A DNA stretch of 63,835 nt, the filler included, from Lenisia limosa (Eukaryota > Protista > Breviatea), in NCBI GenBank assembly GCA_001655205.1. It is 11 parts of 11 records of this genome, joined end to end, with 100 filler letters (N's around TTAATTAATTAA, not from the genome) between each part and the next. Parts side by side here need not be neighbours in the genome. Positions count along the whole stretch, not along the records: positions 41,664 to 48,516 come from LPNZ01008343.1; 10 more parts are not named here. One strand, 5' to 3'. Below the pieces are notes generated by a model. That model was not told the origin of the DNA and did not search any database. It was given only the letters and a program-made list of their open reading frames with translations. Positions 41,925 through 49,064 of the stretch are shown here, piece after piece (within the stretch, counting starts at the first letter, position 1; the number at the start of each line of letters is the position of its first letter). The translations under genes and the position numbers were made by a program.

Positions 41925-42700
41925 ATATGCTGCTGCGCAGAAACCGTGTAACTTATGATTTTTTGATAACTTCACCATTTTTACTTTGGAAATAACGGTT
42001 TTACTCTAAAAACTGCCATGATACAACACAGGTACTTCACTGACAACTCTTTGAGGTAAACTCGTCACAGCTGAAAGAAAAATATTGTATTTCAACAAAG
42101 TTACGGTGACTTTTTCGTTTTCTTTCTTATTTTCTCAGTTCTTTCAGTGGTAGGGATAAGCACTCCTCCTCTAGTCANNNNNNNNNNAACAGATACGGTG
42201 ATGAAACAAGTTCGTTTCTTCGTTTTGGAAAAAGGAGAGAGAGTGGCAATTTTTACTTGGCCAGGTTTGACAATTTTATTATGCAAATAACCTCATGTGG
42301 ATAGCCTTTCGTTTTTATTTGCAAGTCTCCCTGGCTTACCTACATGATTAGTTTGAAGAATAAAGAACAGAGGCATCTGATTTAATGCTAATTTATTAGG
42401 TTATTGCGTCGCTTGAAGAGCTAAAGCCTGATCGTACAAGAAATATGAAAGTGAATAGAGGAGTGCTTACCCCTACCACTGAAAGAATTGAGAAAATGAG
42501 AAAGAAAAAGAAAAAGTCACCGTAACTTTGTTGAAATATAATATTTTTCTTTCAGCTGTGACGAGTTTACCTCAAAGAGNNNNNNNNNNAAAAAACCGTT
42601 ATTTCAAAGTAAAAATGGTGAAGTTCCCCAAAAATCATAAGTGACACGGTTTCTCAAAAGTTTCACGGTTTCTGCGCAGCAGCATATGTAATATCAATAG
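41925..42700. repeat. ~250-bp inverted duplication around a ~280-bp spacer
   Basis: 41925-42177 is the imperfect reverse complement of ~42455-42700. Both arms contain a GVLxPTTERxEKxRKKxKKSP* coding end. Confidence 0.8.
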
Positions 42701-43835
42701 TTTCATATTCTCGAATCCGTACTAACCTTTCCATAGATCGATTCAAAATGGTTCCCGGTGTGAGTTAACGCTATTATTAAATCATTGATATCTCGGGTGT
42801 ATTTTATTTCCATTTAGGATTTCCATCAAGCTGCATACACGAATTGTTGCGGTTGAGGCTTTTTTTGGTAAGGCGGAATGACATACATTCTACTTAACAA
42901 AACGATCTCTACTTCACGACTTACTTCTGGAAGACTGAAATATCATTGATGATTGAGAGACATTCTATAACAAAAGCATTTCCAGTGATGTCTCTACTGA
43001 AATGATTTCCTGTCTTTTTAATGTTGGAGATTAATCGACGGAAAAATGCTAATATGCGGATTGACACGCTCACGTATTTAATATGACTGATATTAGGGTA
43101 GCAAGAAGTGTCATTGGCTCCCGATATCAGCCCTTTGGAGACCCAGGTACGAGAAAGTAAATTAACCCATTTTTATCAAACCCTGACTTTGTAGCACCAG
43201 CAAAAACAGGCATGATTCCTGGGGTGTACAGCGATTCTAACAATGCAATTAATCTCAGTTTCTGATCCAAGTTTCTTTTGTTATGATGATACATGTGAAT
43301 AACATGTCCAATGAAGCTCTGGAATTATTGAACATCAATTCATAATACTATAAAACCCAGTAATAATACACAATGCTGATACCAGCCAGTGCAACCTTCT
43401 TCCAATAACAGAACCTGGAACATGAACAAGGTAATGCAGACAAGTCCAACCTTTGTAGAGAACTCCAATGGGCCCTTATTATTTGCCTTCATAGCCTTAT
43501 GTAATTTGATGAAAGTTATGAGTAATTTTAGCAAGAGAGATTGGCATAGTTGCAGAAGGCGAATACAATGAGTGTTTGTTGTACTCGTCATAATACCCTA
43601 ATGTGGAAGGCAGCGTGTATAATTGTGGATGTATAAGCTGTACGGTAAGGGGATATGAACTGCAATGCTCCAATAAAATCCAAGCACTCACAAGAAATTC
43701 ACATCAAATATCGATATACAATGTATAAATGATATTCTACATATATATATTATACATATAATCTATTGTCTTTATATCTTATCATATGGTATAGATCGTA
43801 CATGTACATTAAATACGTGAGTAACACTTCCTTAG

Positions 43836-44439
43836 CCCGATGAAGGAGAGTTCCGTCTTTTTCGGTCTTCAGGAGGTTGCTATGACTCTCACACCCAAAA
43901 CTTCACCGCTGAGATGGTCCCGCAGATGATCCGCAAGAACATTGTCCTTCGGGAGATTAAATATCGTGTAAGCTCTTCAGCAGATTTTTTACTTGATGCA
44001 CTTTTTTTACCATATTATAGCCTTACCTTCCCGCTTTATATTCAACAGGGTCTTCTCAAGGATGGACGGCACAGAAATCGTGCTTCCACTTTCACCTCGT
44101 CGAACTCACATCTCCCTCACGGTTCCCGAGATCGAAGCCTGTGTCGCTCAAGGCACCAAGCGGGCTTGGACGTCGATCAGCTCTTTCCTCACCGACATGA
44201 CTCCTTCGGAGTTGAACACAATTGCATACCGTCACAGTTTGGGTAAGGTGTTCGTTGAGGAGGATGAGGAGGATGACGAGACGCTCGTTCAAGACGGCGC
44301 AGCTGAGGCTGTTTCCACCGAGCAGATGATTTCGACTTTTGAGGAAGGTAAGCTTTTTAAGCAAGATACCATGGACACCCCTACCGGCCGCCGTCCAATT
44401 CGCCACGTCATTAAGGAGATCTGGTCAGCACCCAAGAAG
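43836..44439 (+). CDS. Internal exons of a hypothetical protein
   Basis: PDEGEFRLFRSSGGCYDSHTQNFTAEMVPQMIRKNIVLREIKYR|VFSRMDGTEIVLPLSPRRTHISLTVPEIEACV...KEIWSAPKK|, with GC-rich third positions and canonical introns. Confidence 0.55.
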
Positions 44440-44524
44440 GTTGGCCAAAAAAAGTATAGATTAATAATACCTCACAAAATTAGTAACATAAAATATGGCA
44501 TGAAAATAGGAACGCAGAGAGCTG

Positions 44525-44640
44525 TGTACATAGATTTGTAAGGCAACTGTTTGGGTGAATAAAATTTTACAAAAATTCAGTATTCCTAATAAACGTAATG
44601 GTGTGGACGGCTTCGGCCAGATACAAACTTGTTTTATTTC
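44525..44640 (+). repeat. Dispersed repeat family B (~115 bp)
   Basis: TTGTAAGGCAA..TTGGGTGAAT...ATGGTGTGGACGGCTTCGGCCAGATACAA. Related copies at 8685-8734, 19875-19975 and 33945-34040 (+), and 22445-22600, 27700-27790, 29685-29725, 30165-30245 and 31290-31380 (-). Confidence 0.75.
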
Positions 44641-45199
44641 TCATATCTGTCTAATATAAAAAAACATAAAAAGTTTGATGACACCATTAGGTTTCGCATC
44701 GCCACCAGAGATACCGCCAAAAGGGAGTAGCGTCTTCTGACATGGCTCCAGCAAGCTTGCCCACGCTTAGCAACGTCTTTAGATCTTCCACAACCCCTCT
44801 CACCAACAGAGGAATGCCAAAGTATCCCGAGCCCCGGCGTCGACTCCATAGACGTTAATATCACCCGACTTCCCAGTTGTGTATTTTATTTTGTGTACTT
44901 TTCTTATTCTGATTTTTCGAAATAGTATTATTGAATTAATGTTTTCTACTCCCAGTAAACTGGGTTATATTTTTTGAGCTTCATTTTAAGTTCTTTAAAG
45001 CCATAAATTATTGATATTTAGAGATGCCATGTCTCCAATGAAAATCAACAAAACAGCTTTCCTGGCTTTTCACAGATCAACTACATCAGCCAGTTTAAGG
45101 GCAGATCAAACAGATCAGGGAAATCAGACATCAGGCCTGGCACCCCACCTCAGCGGCCCCTTGGTCCAGAGTGATTAGAAGATTGGAAGTGAAAGAAAA

Positions 45200-46792
45200 A
45201 TGGGTATGGATCCATCAAAGTCATACAGAACACTAGTCGGAATTAATGGTCCACTAATTGTTCTGGATAATGTAACAGTTTTCAATCTATTTAACAAGTT
45301 TCCTAAGTTCGCTGAGATTGTAAATATTCAGCAACATGATGGGACAATTAGAAAAGGTCAAGTTTTGGAAGTACAGGGAAGAAAGGCAATTGTTCAGGTA
45401 TTTGAAGGTACTGCTGGGCTGGATTCCAAATCATCCGTTGTAAAATTTTCTGGGTCTACTTTTAAGTTTGGAGTTGGTGAAGATTGTCTTGGCAGAATGG
45501 TTCTTTTTTATTTCTCATAGTTTAATGGTAGTGGGGCTGTAATTGACAGGGGACCTTCTATTATTCCTGATGATATCTGTGATATCCAAGGAATACCTAT
45601 AAACCCTGTTCAAAGAGTATATCCACAATCCATGATTGAAACTGGAATCTCTTCTATTGACTTAATGACTTCAGTTGCACGTGGGCAGAAAATTCCTATA
45701 TTTTCAGGTTCTGGTTTGCCCCACAATGAAATTGCTGCACAAATTTGCAGACAAGCCTCTCTTGTTAAAAATTCATTGTCAAAATCTGTTCGTGATGATC
45801 ATGAGGACAACTTTGCTATTGTATTTGGAGCTATGGGGGTTAACATGGAAACAGCCAGGTTCTTTAGAGATGTATGTTTCTCTCTCTCATCCAGAATTTT
45901 GAACAGTCAGGTTCTTTGAGTAGAACAAGTTTCTTTTTGAACCTTGCTAATGACCCTACAATTGAGCGAGTTATTACTCCAAGGTTGGCTCTTACTACAG
46001 CCGAGTTTCTTTCGTTTGAAGTTTTCTTTTATATTAACCTTGCTTGAAATGCATGTATTGACGATCCTTACAGATATGACAGCATATGCTGATGCAGTCA
46101 GAGAGGTATCAGCAGCCAGAGAAGAAGTGCCAGGTAGACGAGGATACCCAGGTTATCTCTATACGGATTTAGCAACAATATATGAAAGAGCCGGGCGAAT
46201 ACTCAATAGAAATGGTTCTCTCACACAAATTCCCATTTTATCAATGCCAAATGATGATATTACACACCCCATCCCTGATCTAACAGGTTACATTACAGGT
46301 TTTTATTATTATTCATTGGAGGGCCAGATTTTTGTGGATAGAGCTTTGAATAATAGAGGAATTTACCCTCCTATTAATGTTTTGCCATCCCTCTCAAGGT
46401 TAATGAAATCTGCTATTGGTGAAGGTTTTACACGTAATGATCACCCTGATGTTTCAAATCAACTAGTTTTCTTAGTTTACATTATCAGTATGCAAATTAT
46501 GCAATCAGTCAAGATATTTTATCAATGAAATCTGTGGTTGGAGAAGAGTCGCTATCCCAAGGTTAAGAGTTCTTTTTTTTAATCATTTGTTTAGAAGATC
46601 ATCTTTATTTAGAGTTTTTAAAGCTTTTCGAAGAAAGTATTTTACAACAAGGTTTTAATCATTCCCATCATAGAAAAAACCCAAAGTCGCTGTATTGAAG
46701 AGTCTCTCAATATTTCTTGGGAAATTTTAAGGCTGTTTCCTAAGCAAGTTCTCAAAAGGATACCGCATTTAGTTCTCCAAGACTATTATTAA
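45200..46792 (+). CDS. ATP6V1B: V-type H+-ATPase subunit B with 8 tiny introns (21, 21, 23, 22, 21, 23, 33, 22 nt), two with non-AG acceptors
   Basis: Conserved motifs [91 protein letters not shown] and [18 protein letters not shown]. Introns: 45278-45298, 45500-45520, 45872-45894, 46021-46042 (GT-TG), 46299-46319 (GT-GG), 46466-46488, 46562-46594, 46652-46673. Confidence 0.97.
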
Positions 46793-49064
46793 TTCATTTC
46801 ACACTTTAGAAATACATGTTAAGGCATATGCATATAGTTTACAGTCAAACGGATATATTTTGGAATAAAGTTTTCTCTTTGTTTCAGAAGCTGTTTATAA
46901 CGTTGCCAATTTTTTAAACGGCATTTTGAAGCTCATATTTGAGAATTTTGTAATAAAATGGGTCTAGGAGGAAATATGGGGACCTCTTTTCAAATTCGAT
47001 CAAAGTTATACAGTTGTTTAAGTTGTAATTTAAGTGGGTCTAAAGGATCTGAAACTGGAGAAGGTTTATCACAGCGATGACGTCAGTGATGGAGTTCATT
47101 CATTCCACCTCCGAGTCGTCTTTTTTTTTTTTTTTTTTTTTTTNNNNNNNNNNNNNNNNNNNNNNNNNNNNNNNNNNNNNNNNNNNNNNNNNNNNNNNNN
47201 NNNNNNNNNGCTGGCGGTGCTGTTAGCTACAGTGACATCCTCAGCCATGCTGTGCACATTAGCGGCCTTGTGGGGCAAGGAGCTCACCTTAAGTCGTATC
47301 ATTAGGGGAAGCTATTTTATACAATTTTATGCTCCTTTCCTAAAACATGTGCATCATAGGTTTGATATGTAGTTATTCACCATCAATGAAACAAATTTTC
47401 CGTACTTGGAAGGAATGGTTGGAGTTGAAAAGCAAGAATGCAGTGGCTGTAGTCAAGTTGTAGGCGCTTTTGAAGCGAGGCACTCATCGGGAAAAGGGAA
47501 GACTGCAGAGATTTCGTTGATGAAGTTACAAGTAATTTATTAGTATGCTGAAAAAAGCCGTAAAAGAACGAGAACGTCCGGACTTTTTCTTGTTTTTTCA
47601 GTCTGGCCTTTGTCTTTTTTTATCTTCTTTTTTCCCCCTTCTTTTATTTTCATCTAAGAAATGGCTTAATTTGACAGAACCATCATGATTACACCACGTC
47701 AATTCATTTGTGTTGGCAATTTTTCCTTGATTATCAATATGTGTCACGCTCTAAATCTCCAAACCTGGCGAGTGTTTTATAAGGGAACCGTTATTTTTGG
47801 AACTCTATTCTAATCTGAGTTGAAGTCGGTTACTTTATTGTATAAGAACTTGAGGAAGTTCAATTAAGTCAAGGAAGATCGAAAGGAAGGAGACTGTATT
47901 TTAGGGAAGAAACTGTGATGGCTGTAAGCGTGACATAGCGATGGTTTCTACAGTCAACTCAAGGACTCACCCAACCGACTACTTACTTCACCTCCAGCAT
48001 GAATCTGGGTTTGTTTTTTTGTTTTCTATTTTGCATATATTTTGAGTAATAGGTGAAGGTACATAATTGTGTCCAGTCACATTATTGTGTCCACTTTTTC
48101 ATTCTTTGAATTTTTTGCTTTAAAAACCCTTCGGATAATTGTAGATAAATGTAGTGATGTAATAATTTTTTTGGGGTAAGGCCTGCTTCCACGATGTCAT
48201 TATTTGACTCCTAAATTGTGATATTAAAGAAAAATAATTAATGTTGCATATTTACTCTTGCCTCAACACACTCTTTTTCTTGACTCGTAACGTTGTGAGC
48301 TTTTGGGCTTCTAAATGTTGTTAGAGAAGAAGAAAGAATAGTGATTCTATGGAACAGTTCTCCCCACTTTTCGATCTGCAATTTCCTTCTTTTTCTCTTG
48401 CAACAAGACGTCAGCCCAGTGTTTTTAGGTCTTCGGAGCGATTGATTTGCGAGCTGTGGGAGATGGCTCAAAAGCGAAGTTTGGGTCAGTGCCAATTAAA
48501 GGATTCCCTTCCCAAGNNNNNNNNNNNNNNNNNNNNNNNNNNNNNNNNNNNNNNNNNNNNTTAATTAATTAANNNNNNNNNNNNNNNNNNNNNNNNNNNN
48601 NNNNNNNNNNNNNNNNTCGCCACAAACCGTCCAGTTCACGCACTAGTACGGTAAGGGAAGAATGGATGGACGTTTCGGCGTCGTCAAGAGAGTGAAGGGC
48701 AACGGCACTGGAACTGAGGAGACGGTCGAGAAGGCCTCCTGTCACGGTCTTGGGGAGGCCTTGGGGGGGGGGGGTCAAGGCAAAGACGGAGGGGGAGTTC
48801 TCCTCTTCATTGTTAAAACTGAGTAACCATGCCATCCACAACGCCTTTACCCCGCCATATATTCTAATTACCCCGCCATCTAATTGTGTCATTGGAAAAG
48901 TCCCACGTTAGTGCTAATCAGTTTCTCATGCTATCTTTAGGAAGGAAGCGACAACAGCACCCAACTCACAGCAGGCAGCCAGCATGATCATCAGAGACAG
49001 CAGCTCTTGGATGCGGTGCGATTTGGGGCATTTCGGGCAATCGGGACGACTATAGATGAGGGAT

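Follow-up and report, generated by a model that had tools for sequence, protein, structure and literature searches.

Eight short introns in a V-ATPase subunit B gene of Lenisia limosa, two of which are very probably removed without a 3' AG

Few signals in eukaryotic genes are as constant as the AG that closes an intron on its 3' side, which the spliceosome reads directly in the second catalytic step. Lineage-wide relaxation of the GT-AG rule is known from Fritillaria, Oikopleura, euglenids and copepods (GA/GG donors). Lineage-wide non-canonical splicing has also been described in Amoebophrya (PMC7789003). In humans and model species, GT..TG and GT..GG junctions accompanied by otherwise normal U2-type signals are very rare (PMC4176328, PMC1557818). 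Tiny spliceosomal introns are described as GT..AG in several lineages (PMC13644364, PMC4986447, PMC6543705, PMC10245619, PMC13685798). The median intron of the myxobolid Myxozoa Thelohanellus kitauei and Myxobolus rasmusseni is 22 bp (PMC13644364); in T. kitauei the majority of introns measure 20–25 bp and the average intron 240 bp (PMC4986447), and the introns of Dicyema are about 27 bp long (PMC6543705). Introns of about 25 nt are found in Paramecium and Nyctotherus, of 15–16 nt in Stentor and Blepharisma, of 16–17 nt in mikrocytids, and of 18–21 nt in chlorarachniophyte nucleomorphs (PMC5014332, PMC9505925, PMC10245619, PMC13685798). Among the tiny introns of ciliates, stop-free multiples of three are disfavoured (PMC13685798, PMC5014332). 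Literature searches returned no account of tiny introns in which non-AG acceptors recur.

The window, a stretch of 63,835 nt joined from 11 parts of the L. limosa genome, carries at 45200–46792 (+ strand) a V-ATPase subunit B gene with nine exons and a product of 468 amino acids. The gene starts with the ATG at 45200 and terminates with the TAA at 46790–46792. Removal of eight short segments yields a 1407-nt frame whose translation contains no internal stops; TAA, TAG and TGA are all absent in frame from the spliced sequence, and TAA serves as a stop here. The exons, placed by the spliced frame and by homology, lie at 45200–45277, 45299–45499 and 45521–45871 (exons 1–3), 45895–46020, 46043–46298 and 46320–46465 (exons 4–6), and 46489–46561, 46595–46651 and 46674–46792 (exons 7–9), all on the + strand. 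Once translated, the exons align with solved subunit B chains of yeast, mammalian and plant V-type ATPases at E values from 1e-16 to 4e-71. Exon 2 corresponds to residues 46–112 of yeast Vma2, exon 3 to residues 113–226 and exon 4 to residues 228–269, while exon 5 begins at residue 270. The colinearity with eukaryotic subunit B (Vma2/ATP6V1B) extends over the full length and includes the N-terminal beta-barrel and the nucleotide-binding alpha/beta domain; PF00006 was matched in the gene and PF02874 on its first ORF. Searches for protein homologues turned up no near relative: the closest, the gene's own ORF excluded, stood at about 84% identity for a query reading through from exon 5 to exon 6 and at about 60% identity for the first ORF. 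The locus is a single-copy, expressed V-ATPase subunit B gene, its frame intact and its poly(A) transcript assembled at a word depth of 133.

Reads from two public runs of one study, one DNA-like (X1) and one of poly(A) RNA (X2), were examined as assembled contigs aligned to 45000–47000, a level of evidence that does not reveal minor isoforms or rare variants of the DNA. The X2 RNA contig (1475 nt) lacks exactly the eight segments and has no mismatches in the exons. The skipped segments begin, in order, at 45278 (21 nt), 45499/45500 (21 nt), 45872 (23 nt), 46021 (22 nt), 46298/46299 (21 nt), 46466 (23 nt), 46560–46562 (33 nt) and 46650–46652 (22 nt). The contig extends on the + strand from 45184 to 46844, being placed on 45184–46559 and 46593–46844 with no other letters, and it provides a 5' UTR of at least 16 nt and a 3' UTR of at least 52 nt. 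A second placement of RNA contigs, at 95% likeness, did not place the spliced contig again, and the junction evidence therefore rests on the first X2 placement. In the DNA, a contig of 1762 nt at a depth of 44.5 is identical to the window and retains all eight introns, and no DNA form devoid of the intron segments was seen among the X1 contigs over 45000–47000 (depth 0). The ENA contig NODE_2079 (8506 nt) likewise shows 100% identity to window positions 42590–47143 over 4554 nt. The intron bases are identical across three assemblies (the window, Logan, and the SPAdes-style ENA contig), which makes base errors unlikely, although all three probably derive from one read set. All eight segments are thus present in genomic DNA and precisely absent from mature RNA, as spliceosomal introns are. 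The initial annotation, made from the sequence alone, had read the gene as V-ATPase B with eight introns, seven of 21–23 nt and one of 33 nt, and had named RNA junctions as a check. The first point is borne out by a residue-for-residue match to yeast and mammalian subunit B and the second by the RNA contig, which omits exactly those segments, so that at contig level the junction check is favourable across all eight.

Six of the eight introns can be placed as GT..AG when their boundaries are slid along the alignment, in which four of the eight positions carry an ambiguity of 1–2 nt. These are introns 1 (45278–45298, 21 nt, phase 0, divisible by three and free of in-frame stops), 2 (45500–45520, 21 nt, phase 0), 3 (45872–45894, 23 nt, phase 0), 6 (46466–46488, 23 nt, phase 0), 7 (46562–46594, 33 nt, phase 1, with an unused internal TTTG at position 28) and 8 (46652–46673, 22 nt, phase 1), all on the + strand. 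A GT donor is available to all eight introns, intron 5 allowing GG as well, and the AG acceptor is lacking from introns 4 and 5 only. Intron 4 (46021–46042, + strand, 22 nt, phase 0) has unambiguous boundaries, with GT..TG as its only placement. The 50 nt that follow its donor contain no AG; the nearest one beyond would give a 53-nt intron and a stop, and retention of the intron leads to a stop at codon 261. Intron 5 (+ strand, 21 nt, phase 1) may be placed at 46299–46319 as GT..GG or at 46298–46318 as GG..TG, and neither placement ends in AG. An AG does occur at 46320–46321, two bases past the intron, and it is unused in the RNA contig; splicing there would produce a 23-nt intron, a frameshift and a stop at codon 344. 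Reading through intron 5 meets no in-frame stop and inserts seven residues inside the invariant TGYIT|EGQI. Alternative AG choices and the retention of intron 4 thus destroy the frame, the seven-residue insert from retained intron 5 being the exception. Several of these points had been anticipated from the genomic sequence: that intron 4 lacks an AG and that its removal restores a colinear protein, which agrees with the single placement and with the Vma2 alignment across exons 4 and 5; that intron 5 splits TGYIT-EGQI; that the downstream AG shifts the frame into a stop; and that the acceptor of intron 5 is GG or, with a shifted donor, the pair is GG-TG, both of which the alignment allows. Introns 4 and 5 are therefore very probably real non-AG introns that are precisely removed, a reading to which we assign a probability of roughly 0.9.

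The best surviving alternative, which we nevertheless regard as unlikely, keeps the AG rule. Intron 5 would be cut mainly at the AG at 46320–46321, the product would be lost to nonsense-mediated decay, and the 21-nt junction would be a stable by-product. The 23-nt intron that this AG defines falls inside the normal length range, and contigs show the dominant stable RNA only, both of which suit such an explanation; some frame-shifted 23-nt product may thus be made and degraded unseen. However, the explanation is inapplicable to intron 4, where no AG follows the donor for 50 nt, it would require a housekeeping gene to lose most of its transcripts, and the mRNA contig is well covered.

Precise removal of two non-AG introns would also be illusory if the real genome had AG at both acceptors and the RNA came from AG-bearing copies, the T read at 46041 and the G read at 46318 being errors of sequencing or assembly, or else marks of a minority allele. 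Contigs drop rare variants, the three assemblies probably share their reads, and the flanks contain sequence variants at about 4%, all of which lend this idea some room. Nevertheless, three different assemblers agree exactly at a word depth of about 45–52, a single contig at single-copy depth covers the gene, with no variant contig appearing even at 90% likeness, and the RNA exons show no mismatches to the DNA over about 1.4 kb. Moreover, two independent errors would be needed, each at acceptor position -2, and the flank variants stop at 45163 and belong to a second copy, which is joined to other sequence and is no allele of this gene. We consider this explanation very unlikely.

The two non-AG introns share a sequence signature with their neighbours. 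Six of the eight introns start with GTTTT, including introns 4 and 5 and four of the six canonical ones, and the third base is T in seven of the eight. Internal positions are 58% T, and G occupies only six of 170 of them against a background of 19% in the piece (binomial P ~1e-9). Past position 10, the terminal G is the sole G in all but one of the seven tiny introns. Every intron has an A at positions 16–19 (in intron 3, position 18 is the sole internal A beyond position 3), and to judge from the sequence this A is the putative branch point. Introns 4 and 5 are indistinguishable from the six GT..AG introns in start motif, length and composition, and RNA folding around the two revealed nothing significant (z -0.9 and 0.0).

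Introns removed by the minor spliceosome, the U12-type, accept varied terminal dinucleotides and place the 3' cut according to its spacing from the branch site, and introns 4 and 5 might be suspected to belong to this type, the more so as a TTAAC near the 3' end of intron 4 recalls the U12 branch-site core. Yet the long conserved U12 5' motif is absent, the 5' ends being GTTTTC and GTTTTT. The TTAAC stands alone in intron 4, about 5 nt from the end, whereas the branch-to-end spacing typical of U12-type introns is 10–15 nt, and intron 5 has no such core and no TCCTTAAC-like element. The two introns accordingly show neither the extended 5' motif nor a TCCTTAAC-like branch site at 10–15 nt from the 3' end, and a U12-type nature appears slightly less probable still than an AG hidden in the genome. 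Least probable of all is that introns 4 and 5 are cut non-spliceosomally, by an endonuclease and ligase of the HAC1/XBP1 type or through DNA deletion in the transcribed nucleus, for although their ends are non-canonical and their size is near that of the XBP1 intron (26 nt) and of the smallest ciliate eliminated sequences, stem-loops around the cut sites are not prominent, DNA contigs without the segments number zero, the ends are GT..TG and GT..GG in place of the TA..TA of ciliate-type internal eliminated sequences, and the likeness to the six GT..AG neighbours speaks against a separate pathway.

The locus shares its 21–23 nt length class with the myxobolid Myxozoa, and it resembles both these and Dicyema in its reduced splice-site motifs and in weak A residues ahead of the 3' end. 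As in T. kitauei, a few longer introns (251 and 38 nt here) occur beside the tiny ones. The repeat-rich, gene-poor flanks, the orphan genes and the coding G+C of about 37% are also reminiscent of myxobolid Myxozoa and, to a lesser degree, of Dicyema (PMC6543705). In contrast, the introns of both groups have AG acceptors and a 'GTa' donor, while the donor here is GTT and two of the eight acceptors are non-AG. The narrow length distribution near the physical minimum, the AT-richness and the branch-like A near the 3' end are shared with the tiny introns of ciliates, mikrocytids and nucleomorphs, all of which, unlike introns 4 and 5 here, are reported as GT..AG. Compared with the ciliate set, TAA is a stop here and the piece contains long introns as well. 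The gene also differs from ciliates in having two stop-free introns that are multiples of three, introns 1 and 5 (45278–45298 and 46299–46319, 21 nt each), whose retention would in either case add seven residues silently and trigger no decay.

With respect to known non-canonical junctions, the non-AG sites of humans and model species make up a minute fraction of introns and are often alternative sites beside an AG, whereas here they close two of the eight constitutive introns of a single essential gene, far more than the rarity of such junctions in model organisms would suggest. The lineages with relaxed rules (Fritillaria, Oikopleura, euglenids, Amoebophrya, copepods) differ in another way, in that they mostly change the donor or both ends, have longer introns, or rely on pairing of the intron ends. 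In the gene described here, acceptor position -2 alone differs and no pairing is evident.

The signature common to the odd and the canonical introns, together with the lack of a significant fold, of a U12 motif and of DNA excision, points to one spliceosome for all eight, and from their likeness to the six GT..AG introns we infer that introns 4 and 5 are removed spliceosomally. We favour, with moderate confidence, the view that distance and a terminal G set the 3' cut in the tiny introns through the ordinary major (U2-type) spliceosome. One such spliceosome would remove all eight introns; in mini-introns so rich in T and poor in G, the position of the 3' cut would depend mainly on a short, constant distance from the 5' splice site and the branch adenosine. 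The terminal G would also contribute, while the A at position -2 would be preferred and yet dispensable. Splicing would accordingly stay in place after an AG has mutated to TG or GG, and the AG two bases past intron 5 would lie too far away to be used, and is not seen in use. The preference for AG where one is present is suggested by intron 7, in which the TTTG at position 28 is passed over in favour of the AG at 32–33. This distance rule is drawn from eight introns of one gene, with putative branch points guessed from their sequence, and it leaves unexplained the skipped G at position 20 of intron 5 and that at position 28 of intron 7, save on the assumption that splicing favours AG and that unproductive products do not persist. 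A branch A only 3–6 nt from the cut, if such is its position, would be a geometry unlike that of well-studied spliceosomes.

A bolder reading, possible though somewhat doubtful, is that the acceptor of the major spliceosome has been relaxed throughout the lineage, from AG to any base followed by G, a genome-wide rule that a single gene is too little to establish. An intron of about 22 nt would then be cut at a distance measured from the 5' splice site or the branch point, and perhaps 10–25% of constitutive introns would end in TG, GG or CG. Accurate, constitutive AG-less splicing in an essential gene, if true, would provide a handle on whether the 3' site is chosen by a ruler or by sequence near the minimum intron size, and would reveal changed or lost splicing factors, such as the small U2AF subunit, Slu7, Prp18 or Prp8. 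It would also mean that predictors restricted to GT-AG miss or distort many genes in tiny-intron genomes. Were the phenomenon confined to a few introns, it would still constitute a clean, RNA-supported case of tolerated acceptor decay.

A degenerate pattern scan of a metagenome collection for relatives sharing intron 5 returned 18 matches, none of which was a V-ATPase B. The closest metagenome fragments (L003, L004) were rejected as relatives, since they belong to other eukaryotes with introns of 40–110 nt. A further metagenome contig (L024) proved to be from a ciliate, the breaks in its ORF being reassigned stop codons and not introns.

Around the subunit B gene, a Pfam scan of the flanks and Rfam and tRNA scans of the piece returned nothing. 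The run of N at 47144–47209 is bridged by 89 real bases in the ENA contig (L001 4945–5033). The left end of that contig (L001 216–455) matches window positions 42177–41939 in reverse at 95%, which indicates an inverted duplication at the left of the piece; no telomere repeats were found at the contig ends. The gene calls stored with the ENA contig (L002 610–1302 and 5773–6723) read through stop codons, and one of 316 amino acids runs across introns 3–6 and an in-frame TGA. The gene caller evidently used a non-standard code, and as they read through stops these calls are no evidence for gene structure.

The 2.5 kb upstream (42590–45163) is present in two copies about 4% apart, with variant letters at about 45 of a depth of about 87. 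The two copies diverge at 45163, 37 nt before the ATG, past which unrelated sequence follows in other contigs of DNA and in an RNA contig of 645 nt. A 38-nt GT..AG intron at 43157–43194 is spanned by an RNA contig with three mismatches, which probably comes from the second copy. Also upstream of the V-ATPase gene, an expressed orphan gene on the + strand occupies 43993–44439 and 44691–44858 (start approximate), interrupted by an RNA-supported GT..AG intron of 251 nt (44440–44690). Its exons have a G+C of about 53%, against 37% nearby, and encode an acidic stretch; it contains no Pfam domain, and a search of 5.8 billion clusters returned no homologue apart from the ORF of the contig itself. The tiny introns and these introns of 251 and 38 nt in one piece indicate that the organism mixes tiny and ordinary introns. 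Within the 251-nt intron, the segment 44594–44652, where Rfam returned nothing, reaches a summed DNA word depth of about 25,000, compared with about 45 for single-copy sequence, and about 500 contigs pile up on it. In one DNA contig the 25-nt core at 44600–44624 recurs beyond a spacer of 30 nt, and the contigs' loose ends are alike, which suggests that this segment is a single unit of a satellite about 55 nt in length and very abundant.
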